A DNA stretch of 63,716 bases, counting the filler, from Olpidium bornovanus S191 (lineage: Eukaryota > Fungi > Olpidiomycota), in NCBI GenBank assembly GCA_017911155.1. It is 30 parts of 30 records of this genome, joined end to end, with 100 filler letters (N's around TTAATTAATTAA, not from the genome) between each part and the next. Parts side by side here need not be neighbours in the genome. Positions count along the whole stretch, not along the records: positions 14,985 to 17,217 come from JAEFCI010001159.1; 29 more parts are not named here. One strand, written 5' to 3'. Below the pieces are notes generated by a model that saw nothing but the letters and a program-made list of their open reading frames with translations, ran no database searches and was not told the DNA's origin. Within the stretch, counting starts at the first letter, position 1, and the number at the start of each line of letters is the position of its first letter. Positions 14,451 through 17,217 of this stretch are shown piece after piece. The position numbers and the translations under genes are program-made.

Positions 14451-15018
14451 GAACACGACACGGCCGGCCAATTTGATAGAGATAGCGGAAACGGCCGGCG
14501 GAAAAGAAAGGCGTCTTTTCCGCGCCGATTTTTTCGAAAGGGCAAAGTGAGCTTCCATGAGTATACGTCTTTCCGAGTCGAGAGTTGGTCAAACGCGGGA
14601 AAGTCGCGTGGGGCGGGTGCAGAAGGCTGCCCGCCAGCTGGTGCAGCTTTCTACGTGCCGCGTGGGGGCCGGTGAGGCGCGCGCGCGCTAACAAAAAGCC
14701 CGCCCGACAAACACCCCGCACACGCGCACGCGCGGGCCGCGCTTTAGTCACACGCATGCTCGGTGATCGGTTTGTCTGACGCTCATTTTACGTGGGCATT
14801 ATGCCAAAGATGTCGGGCGGTTTTTTTTTTTTGTTTTTTTTTTTTTTTTTTTTTTTTTGTTACGCGCGACGTGCCGCGCAGGCCNNNNNNNNNNNNNNNN
14901 NNNNNNNNNNNNNNNNNNNNNNNNNNNNTTAATTAATTAANNNNNNNNNNNNNNNNNNNNNNNNNNNNNNNNNNNNNNNNNNNNCATGCCAAGTTTTATA
15001 GTGAAATTTTTTCCGCAG

Positions 15019-17217
15019 CCGTGCGGCGATTTCGAGAGGAGCACCCGATATTGAGAGCGAAACTTTTCAGGAACGAGAGAATTGTTGACGCGGACATCGA
15101 GGGGTTCGTCGACCGCCAGCCTCGCCCAGATTCTCGCCGGGATTGGAGAAGGCGAAGCAGCGATGGAAATTTGGATGAAGGGCTCGCGGATGACGACTTG
15201 CCACTGTTTTACTCCGAAATATTGCTCGGGGGTGAAGGCGTAGCCGAGCAGTTATGGGACCACGTTCAACGTTACATATCGGAGGCGGACCCGGTGTCAG
15301 CGCCATTCAAAGTATTTTTGGCGTGCCGCGAAGGCGGCAGCGCGTGCGACTGGGCCGACGCCTCGTCGGACGCGAATGGCGACGTCTGCATACACGTTGC
15401 ATTTGTGGCATCGACGGGGTTCGCAGACGACGTGACCTTGACGTGGGCGGCGCGGCAAGTCCTCGCTCTCTACAGCAGAGCGGTGCGGGCCCACGAGCGA
15501 GCTGTGCCAGAAGTTGTTCGGGGCAAATACGCCCACGACGGGCTAGGCGATCTTGGCCGCCAGCAGCTGGAGCAGTATGAGACCCCGGAGGGGACGTACG
15601 GCTTCCTCGACTTTGCCTTCGACGAGTCCCACGATGTCTCGCAGCGTCCCGTGCGGCAGCAGCTCGCTTACTGGCGGACACAATTGTCCGAGACGAGCCA
15701 GGAGATTGTCGACGCCCGCAAGCGCGCGGAACTCGAATCCCAGATTCGCCGCCTCACCGCCCAGCGCAACGGATGCCTCCTCCAGCGCGACTCGGTGCTG
15801 AAGCGGCGGCCCGATCTCGACGCGCAGCTCGAAGACTTACGGACGCAGCGGCGGCGCATCGACGAGCAGGCCAGCGATGTCAGCTCCGTCGCCTACGCTG
15901 ACAGCGTGACCGGCGAGAACATAGTCATCTCTATGCAGGCAAAGCAGGCGCTCATCAAGGCCGTTCTCGGCGAAGAGGCGGCGGAGGAGAATATCGACAA
16001 GTTCCTGGAGAAGCACCAGGTACCCAAGGAAACCCGGGAAAAAATCTGCGCCGAGAAAATGAGCGTCGAGTCGTTCATCGCGCTCGACGATCGGGTTCTC
16101 ACGGAGCGCGGAATCATTATGACAAAGGACCGACGCCAGATCATGGCGTTGTCCGACTTCGTGCGAAACCGCGTGCGGGAGTGCCTCCAGGAGCAGACTC
16201 GCGTGAAGTACACCCTGGAGCGGAAGATCTTGAAGCTGCAGCGAGAAGTCGAACAGGCTGTCGACGACCTCAAGCGTAATCAAGACCAGCTGGACGATGT
16301 GGAGGACAAGGTCATAAAGGTTTACAACGAGCTGAACCCACCGGTCGTCGAGATGATCATTCCACAGCTCTCGCTGCTGGGGATCGGCGCTTACAACTCC
16401 CTTGAAAAGAAGGCAGCCGAAGTGGGATCGAGTAAACGTCAGCTGCATGGGTTCATTCCTGTTCGTATGGAGAAGGAATCCGTGGACAAACTGCGGTATT
16501 ACTACCGCGACTTCAAAGCGGAGAGGCATCGGCTGAGGCACGCACAGAGAAAAAAAGACGCCGCACTTTACCAGGAGCCAGCAGTAGCGGACGGAGGCGG
16601 CATCTCTGCCTCTTCAGCGGTCGGAGATGACGACGCAGAGGAGGTCTCGAGTGGCGACGAGAGCAGCGACCCTTCAGACTACGAGTTTGTGGCCAACATG
16701 CCGAACAAGTCCATGGAAGCCATATGTCTGGCCGCATTTTCGATTCTGCTCAAACATATCACTGGAACGGAAAAGTTTATTATCGGGGACTCTATGTCAT
16801 TCCGCCGACGGTATGACGCCGCCGGAGCATGTGCCGGGCCGCTGACAAATACGCTGCCAATCAAGGTAGATTTGTCCAGCGCGACGATGACGTTTCAGTC
16901 CCTGCTGGCGAACATGGTCAAAACGCTTAGAGACGGCAAAAAGAACGGCTACAGTTGTCCGCTGCCGCTAATCGCCCGGCGCCTCGATCGGCCGGAACTG
17001 ACACTGCCGGTGCGGTTCCAGTACATCGTGGAAAAGGAGCAGGAACACTGGTGCTCCCTCGGCCTCTCCATCGGCGACTTAGTCGCAATCCCGGCCGACG
17101 CGCAGGACCGGGAAGCGGAGACCGCGTCGCGGGACCCGACCATCCCGCCGATGCAACGCGTGTGGGCGCAGAACAAGCAGGAGGACTTCGAGCTGAAGCT
17201 GGTGCTGGTCGAGCATG
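15019..17217 (+). CDS. NRPS-type condensation-domain protein with degenerate active site and coiled-coil/SAM-like insert, partial
   Basis: One exon of about 730 codons. C-domain motifs: EEHPILRAKL, QLAYWRTQL, ICLAAFSILLKHITGTEKFIIG, GPLTNTLPIKVDLSSATMTFQSLL, DFELKLVL. Confidence 0.75.

Follow-up and report, generated by a model that had tools for sequence, protein, structure and literature searches.

Does a condensation domain that has lost its catalytic histidines still work as an enzyme, or has its fold been put to another use? To our knowledge, work on condensation (C) domains has been confined almost entirely to catalytic domains of bacterial and higher-fungal peptide synthetases. The question is raised here by a gene fragment of the fungus Olpidium bornovanus S191 (assembly GCA_017911155.1). 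The window (the whole 63,716-nucleotide stretch of DNA that was analyzed, in which 30 parts of 30 records are joined with filler letters between them) carries this fragment at positions 14,985 to 17,217, a piece derived from record JAEFCI010001159.1. A first-pass annotation, made from the sequence alone, had proposed that the piece encodes a stand-alone C domain with its HHxxxDG motif erased, a pseudoenzyme repurposed as a scaffold or ligand sensor. We found that the encoded protein (hereafter, the window protein) is a condensation domain by sequence and by the fold of a predicted model, that sequence comparison places the loss of the His pair across its whole family, and that the two lobes of the fold are separated by a conserved arm with a putative SAM-like tip, an architecture that would suit a scaffold or adaptor.

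The condensation fold of an edge-cut frame

A single plus-strand frame (that of base 14985) was open for 744 codons and passed both edges of the piece, in line with the truncation at both ends noted in the first-pass annotation, and the G+C content along the piece was 53 to 67%. When this frame was aligned with a 980-residue orthologue from the Logan assemblies (P0001), 99% of its length matched at 30% identity (E 4e-93), and about 80 further family representatives aligned with the window protein likewise. By comparison with the orthologues, the frame appears to lack about 40-55 residues at the start of the C domain, with the C1 motif, together with any low-complexity N-terminal region and approximately the last 70 residues; in the predicted model, the piece starts about 40 residues into the condensation domain and stops shortly before the domain end.

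Sequence profiles identified the fold in both lobes. The whole window protein scored 44.7 bits (E 1e-11) against Pfam PF00668 (Condensation; gathering cut-off of 30.6 bits), with the main stretch placing residues 572 to 672 on profile positions 246 to 343, and the C-terminal 260 residues alone scored 39.1 bits (E 4.9e-10). The N-terminal 240 residues, searched alone as a single sequence, gave no Pfam match, so the assignment of the N-lobe rests on the family profile and the model. Alignment of family profiles by hhalign to 13 canonical C domains of nonribosomal peptide synthetases (NRPSs) gave a probability of 96.7% for the N-lobe (E 4.5e-10, 157 columns) and 98.1% for the C-lobe (E 1e-13). 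A phmmer search of PDB sequences with the single window protein returned marginal C-domain matches, including the Txo2 and McyB C domains, and an NCBIfam scan of the same protein returned noise only.

An AlphaFold2 model built from a 50-sequence family alignment had a mean predicted local distance difference test (pLDDT) score of 80.2 and a predicted template modeling score of 0.70. VIA-align superposed this model onto solved C-type domains with Z scores of 17.7 to 20.6, aligning 317 to 345 residues from both lobes and covering the solved chains from about residue 41 to residues 380-395; the matches included RzmA, SrfA-C, CmnI, EntF, Txo, and X-domain, terminal cyclizing (CT), and heterocyclization (Cy) domains. 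Foldseek also returned C-type domains only for the whole model, with broken alignments and low template modeling scores that arose because of the insert between the lobes and were resolved with VIA-align. Every neighbor found in an ESM Atlas shape search was a Condensation cluster. Both the profile matches and the predicted structure bear out the condensation fold supposed by the first-pass annotation. The NRPS C domains of RzmA (starter C, 7c1p), SrfA-C (8f7g/2vsq), and EntF (5ja2), at Z 19 to 20.6, have in common with the model the two-lobed chloramphenicol-acetyltransferase-like fold, the order of the C2-, C4-, and C5-like motifs, and the Asp and Ser of the C3 motif; the family differs from them in lacking the His pair, in being free-standing rather than set between carrier and adenylation domains, and in its added insertions.

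The HHxxxDG site and the surrounding motifs

The C-domain motifs followed the canonical order, as had been claimed for the approximately 730 codons of the frame, with C2-like (residues 21-40), C3 (143-151), C4-like, and C5-like sites in turn. The spread of a domain of about 450 residues over 730 codons is explained by about 223 residues inserted between the lobes, 12 more in the C2 hairpin, and disordered loops at residues 48 to 74 and approximately 529 to 573. At the HHxxxDG position the window protein reads VASTGFADD (residues 141-149, positions 15405-15431), with the helix RQVLALYSR coming next, and the hhalign register confirmed the placement made in the first-pass annotation: S143 and T144 fall on the two His residues, D148 on the Asp, D149 on the Gly, and T151 on the Ser. 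Thus, both His residues are replaced in the window protein (by Ser and Thr) and the Asp is retained.

Column counts over the 63 family members having this region extended the loss to the family. The first His position was never His (0/63) and never Asp, with Ser in 50 of the 63 sequences. The second, catalytic position held 16 different residues, led by Thr (18), Ser (10), and Leu (5), followed by Arg, Lys, Pro, and others; His occurred there only once, in P0042 from Synchytrium endobioticum (SHTLCDE). The motif Asp (D148) was kept in every sequence (63/63), a Ser or Thr three residues past it in 58/63, and R607 in 48 of 50 sequences; the family retains the residues that hold the motif loop. 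On these alignments, the His pair is erased across the family and the catalytic position appears unconstrained, which answers the first-pass question of whether the His loss is conserved.

Related domains with altered motifs differ from this pattern. Fungal terminal CT domains carry Ser at the first His position (SHxxxD), as do most family members, and the TqaA CT structures (5dij, 5ejd) matched the model at Z of about 18; these domains keep the second, catalytic His, however, and stand last in fungal NRPSs, and within the family only P0042 reads so. Its SHTLCDE sequence, which resembles the SHxxxD of the CT domains, could be an ancestral retention or a reversal. Cy domains are set apart by their DxxxxD motif, which is absent from the family, and Cy structures (7jtj) matched no better than C domains.

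Elsewhere in the lobes, the C4-like motif aligned to the yaDfa of the canonical profile, with F207, D209, F210, and A211 common to P0001. The C5-like motif, AGPLTNTLPIKVDL (canonical vGxFvNTlplR.dl), is the part nearest to true NRPS C domains and the region that giant NRPSs match in profile searches; among 50 sequences, G618 and P625 were invariant and P619 and D629 at least 90% conserved. In the C2-motif hairpin, a family-specific stretch of about 12 residues, RNERIVDADIEG, was the best conserved part of the N-lobe and faced a gap in the canonical C-domain profile (D35 invariant; N30, I33, and D37 at least 90% conserved). The residues invariant among the 50 sequences were D35, D148, E412, R420, P452, H591, G594, G601, G618, and P625.

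The inserted arm, the family, and its range

Every family member has the insert between the lobes, which canonical C domains lack. In the model it consists of a 54-residue helix (residues 244-297), a beta-hairpin (301-316), a bundle of short helices (317-374), and a 71-residue helix (380-450). The two long helices were modeled with pLDDT values of 91 to 97 and are predicted to run antiparallel because they are joined at the tip; judged from the helix lengths, the resulting stalk would reach roughly 8 nm if straight. Residues 381 to 420, which include the invariant E412 and R420, form the most conserved part of the piece (family consensus TKDRRKILALxEYVRNRIKExLQEQxKVKFxLERKI), and the beta-hairpin has the family consensus Y.D..TGE.I.IS. 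An unspliced intron was ruled out as the origin of the insert, which is in frame and contains the most conserved protein sequence of the family.

The tip of the arm resembled SAM domains. When folded alone (pLDDT 85.9), its best VIA-align match was the ANKS6 SAM domain (50 of 60 residues, 1.6 Å root-mean-square deviation, 30% identity) with a Z of 7.2, a value in the range common for small helical domains and not decisive; nearly all of the next 30 or so matches were SAM domains as well (Z 5.6-7.1). The top Foldseek matches were again nearly all SAM domains, none reaching E ≤ 0.001. When a tip profile (50 sequences, residues 292-388) was run against PDB sequences, the SAM domains of ANKS6 (E 0.0028) and SASH3 (E 0.004) ranked first, with SASH1, BICC1, and ANKS3 lower. 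We assign the tip as SAM-like with moderate confidence on the basis of these profile matches and the predicted structure. It would have in common with the SAM domains of ANKS6, BICC1, tankyrase, Eph receptors, and Vts1 a five-helix bundle; profile matches were weak but consistent (E 0.003-0.005). It would differ from them in lying inside another domain, on a coiled-coil hairpin and with a beta-hairpin before it, and in falling below the Pfam SAM models. The last helix of the SAM-like domain continues into the returning stalk helix.

An exhaustive HMMER search of 1.84 billion representatives with a two-sequence profile gave 285 matches, 76 of them at E ≤ 1e-30 and mostly 700 to 1,500 residues long. 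Below these 76 representatives the matches dropped to giant NRPSs aligning over the C5 region only. Family members scored 25 to 53 bits on PF00668, mostly through the C-lobe alone, whereas the NRPS fragments just under the family border scored 375 to 621 bits and had AMP-binding and PP-binding domains; on these sequence scores, the border is sharp. A word-based protein search with the whole query found one homologue, P0001, and one limited to the conserved arm of another member (P0004) recovered family members. The same kind of search with the 50-sequence alignment found none, an uninformative outcome in which coiled-coil or low-complexity words probably swamped the candidates.

All of the approximately 40 named members came from zoosporic fungi, answering the first-pass question of whether orthologues exist in chytrids and other early-diverging fungi. 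They represent Chytridiomycota (Batrachochytrium, Homolaphlyctis, Spizellomyces, Phlyctochytrium, Gaertneriomyces, Rhizophlyctis, Borealophlyctis, Chytriomyces, Rhizoclosmatium, Obelidium, Cladochytrium, Polychytrium, Synchytrium, Caulochytrium, Globomyces, and others), Monoblepharidomycetes (Gonapodya), Blastocladiomycota (Allomyces, Blastocladiella, Coelomomyces, Paraphysoderma, and Sorochytrium), and Rozellomycota (Rozella allomycis). Among the named representatives none belonged to Dikarya, Mucoromycota, animals, or bacteria; of the 82 representatives, about half were unnamed (metagenome or Logan sequences) or not looked up, and the apparent restriction to zoosporic fungi is a strong pattern in the sequence record rather than proof. 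Source annotations call the members hypothetical proteins or, automatically, Condensation domain-containing proteins. The window protein was at most 35% identical to any family representative. Its gene clearly comes from a zoosporic fungus distant from all those sampled. In a FastTree phylogeny, read without support values and given no weight, the query lay outside the core chytrid clades and adjoined Paraphysoderma. The identity of about 30% along the whole length across phyla, with its invariant residues, points to a family that is most likely old and under selection.

The members also appeared to be free-standing. No AMP-binding or PP-binding domain was found in P0001 or in seven other full-length members, in which Ser-rich low-complexity sequence precedes the C fold and the protein ends about 70 residues past the point where the piece stops. 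Precomputed Pfam assignments of 29 members listed PF00668 only, apart from two with a cyclin domain or an HABP4_PAI-RBP1 domain, which look like gene-model fusions. The first-pass claim of stand-alone status and of missing adenylation and carrier domains therefore stands for the orthologues; for the gene of the window protein, which is truncated on both sides, it is left to the comparison with them.

The piece was also present elsewhere. A 4,592-base Logan contig from another sample contained it entirely with four single-base differences, two synonymous (15809 in R275 and 15944 in K320) and two conservative changes at poorly conserved positions (15876, D298N; 16395, N471D). A soil metagenome and root metatranscriptomes contained parts of the piece. 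JGI metagenome contigs, scanned for an extension of the gene both with a protein pattern and with an exact 28-base sequence, gave no match.

The features of the piece are collected in Table 1. P0001 has a loop of like character at the C-lobe site of the acidic, Ser-rich loop. The remaining open reading frames of the piece, on both strands, were short or antisense and without support. One of them, a 234-residue antisense frame (15837-16541, minus strand) opposite the conserved insert, had no homology support and was rejected as most likely a by-product of G+C-rich coding sequence.

Table 1. Features of the piece in window coordinates, with residue numbers of the open frame and the basis of each assignment
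Feature	Residues	Positions	Strand	Basis
Internal part of a protein-coding gene, cut at both edges		14985-17216	+	Open frame of 744 codons; end-to-end alignment with orthologues
Predicted N-terminal lobe of the condensation fold (disordered loop 48-74)	1-238	14985-15698	+	hhalign, VIA-align, model
RNERIVDADIEG, family-specific stretch in the C2-motif hairpin		15069-15104	+	Conservation, hhalign gap
STGFADD at the HHxxxDG position	143-149	15411-15431	+	hhalign register, family column counts
C4-like YGFLDFAF, lobe-linking helix, followed by the AYW helix	205-212	15597-15620	+	Alignment to yaDfa of the canonical profile
Family-specific insert between the lobes	240-462	15702-16370	+	Model, conservation, absence from canonical C domains
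Predicted beta-hairpin at the stalk tip	301-316	15885-15932	+	Strands 301-305 and 312-316 in whole and tip-only models
Putative SAM-like five-helix domain	~336-388	15990-16148	+	Tip-only model, VIA-align, Foldseek, family profile
Predicted C-terminal lobe of the condensation fold, edge-cut	485-744	16437-17216	+	PF00668, hhalign, phmmer
Acidic, Ser-rich, probably disordered loop in the C-lobe	~529-573	16569-16703	+	pLDDT 41-51, low conservation
C5-like motif AGPLTNTLPIKVDL	617-630	16833-16874	+	Conservation, alignments

The locus of P0001 (L001) is compact eukaryotic DNA on a chytrid-like contig. An HABP4_PAI-RBP1 gene (L001:55-801, plus strand) lies just upstream of P0001 and a PRP38 gene (L001:4582-5286, minus strand) downstream. 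In Phlyctochytrium bullatum, the gene model of the orthologue (P0010) carries PF04774 too; the adjacency of the orthologue and the HABP4-like gene may be conserved, or the models may be fused. The P0001 frame is open upstream to an ATG at 817 (L001:817-4545, plus strand), which would give 1,242 residues instead of the 980 called; the extra 262 residues are Ser-rich and without a Pfam match, and the true start is uncertain.

Scaffold, enzyme, or remnant

We consider it probable, with considerable room for doubt, that the window protein represents a free-standing C-fold protein that does not carry out canonical condensation and serves instead as a scaffold or adaptor. Retention of the Asp, the Ser/Thr, R607, and the C5 motif preserves the fold with its central cleft even though the canonical catalytic residue is missing. 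Under this proposal, condensation of carrier-bound substrates would have been lost, the C-fold body would provide a platform for binding, perhaps still of a pantetheine- or acyl-type ligand or of a partner protein, and the SAM-tipped arm would make contacts with other proteins or allow self-association. We infer the catalytic inertness, the scaffold role, and the binding by the SAM-like tip from these features. A homodimer prediction with two copies of the insert (residues 240-462) scored 0.00, which is evidence neither way. As for the pseudoenzyme put forward in the first-pass annotation, the SAM-tipped arm fits a scaffold and the His loss proved to be family-wide; the catalytic half of the claim does not follow from that loss, for the reasons given below.

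By analogy, the X-domain of glycopeptide antibiotic synthetases may be the best functional precedent. Its role is to recruit partner enzymes (P450s), not to catalyze, and it combines, as the family does, the condensation fold with a degenerate active site (4tx2, 6m7l; Z 17.7-18.4). The X-domain has no insert and forms part of the terminal module of a bacterial NRPS, whereas the family orthologues are free-standing, and its match to the model was no better than those of active C domains and so gives no sign of specific kinship. The fold and this type of degeneration are known; the architecture, with its 223-residue coiled-coil and SAM-like insert and 12-residue C2-hairpin insertion, and the biological setting in zoosporic fungi are new.

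Several points weigh against a scaffold without catalysis. Loss of the His pair is no proof of inactivity because Cy domains of the same superfamily condense with DxxxxD instead of HHxxxDG, and some C domains tolerate mutation of the second His; the retained Asp, Ser/Thr, Arg, and C5 motif could equally describe a working pocket. The Pfam models SAM_1 and SAM_2 gave no match on the tip of the window protein, and the structural match of this tip to SAM domains is not decisive. The gene of the window protein is edge-cut and may carry attached domains. With regard to transcription, three metatranscriptome runs contained only small shares of the piece, and no read on it occurred among the approximately 6% that was read of each of three raw-read RNA runs, a sampling that is no test of expression. 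A literature search by family description and by orthologue accessions, in searchable journals only, found no paper on the family. The organism label of the three raw-read RNA runs, which they share with the runs that best matched the piece, may denote the host or the sample rather than the fungus owning the gene.

The protein might instead still be an enzyme, a distinctly less probable but substantial alternative, in the form of a free-standing acyltransferase or condensation-type catalyst that uses non-His residues on coenzyme A- or carrier-bound substrates and is placed in a complex by its arm. The candidate residues would be the Ser conserved in place of the first His, the invariant Asp, or the family-specific DADVEG stretch. 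Besides the activity of Cy domains, this reading is favored by the strong constraint on the cleft motifs other than the His pair (D148, the Ser/Thr, R607, and the C5 motif), by the prevalence of Ser at the first position, and by retention of the family across several fungal phyla. Free-standing C-type enzymes also exist: SgcC5 (4znm) and CmnI (9uay), both among the fold matches, have the condensation fold as a separate protein, as do VibH and PapA5. As far as is known, these enzymes keep HHxxxDG and are active, and they differ from the family in being bacterial, in belonging to biosynthetic clusters, and in lacking the arm. Against catalysis, the 16 residues tolerated at the catalytic position include Pro, Leu, Arg, and Glu, which argues against selection for chemistry there; no other conserved His, Cys, or Ser was assigned to the cleft; conservation is strongest in the arm, not around the cleft; and no member that was checked had a fused carrier or adenylation partner.

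The stand-alone appearance could also result from the cut ends, the domain belonging in O. bornovanus to a larger multidomain synthetase or other fusion. The frame does pass both edges of the piece, and the 4,592-base contig reaches about 1.8 kb further on the 5' side of the gene and about 0.5 kb on the 3' side. We regard such a fusion as improbable: the orthologues examined at full length show nothing but low-complexity sequence ahead of the C fold and end soon after it, 0.5 kb downstream is too short for a carrier and an adenylation domain, and the piece has the diagnostic insert and the His-less motif of the family. Even less credible, and contradicted by the conservation data, is decay of a onetime synthetase domain into a functionless relic, as the lost catalytic motif and the weak Pfam scores of the family might suggest. 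The 744 codons are open with no stop, full-length orthologues with invariant residues and the conserved insert occur in Rozella, blastoclads, Gonapodya, and many chytrid orders, and the four contig differences are synonymous or conservative, two of each.

The scaffold or adaptor interpretation allows a further, speculative step, which we put forward as unlikely enough to be held loosely: the family may be a fungal invention older than the split of Rozella from the other fungi, a His-stripped, SAM-armed scaffold, structural or regulatory in role, tied to zoosporic life and lost with the swimming-spore stage. If so, it would join a very small number of NRPS-fold pseudoenzymes that work in cell biology and not in biosynthesis. 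Spizellomyces punctatus, from one of the genera with a family member, has been genetically transformed (PMC7213984).

Whichever of these readings holds, the family appears to have been kept under selection in every zoosporic fungal phylum sampled, including in Batrachochytrium (orthologue F4PB62), which infects amphibians, and Synchytrium, which infects potato. If its members are active, they would represent a new catalytic solution within the condensation fold; if they are scaffolds, the short list of condensation-fold pseudoenzymes, exemplified by the X-domain, would extend to eukaryotic cell biology. The apparent restriction to zoosporic fungi would make the family a candidate marker for a function lost in fungi without swimming spores.

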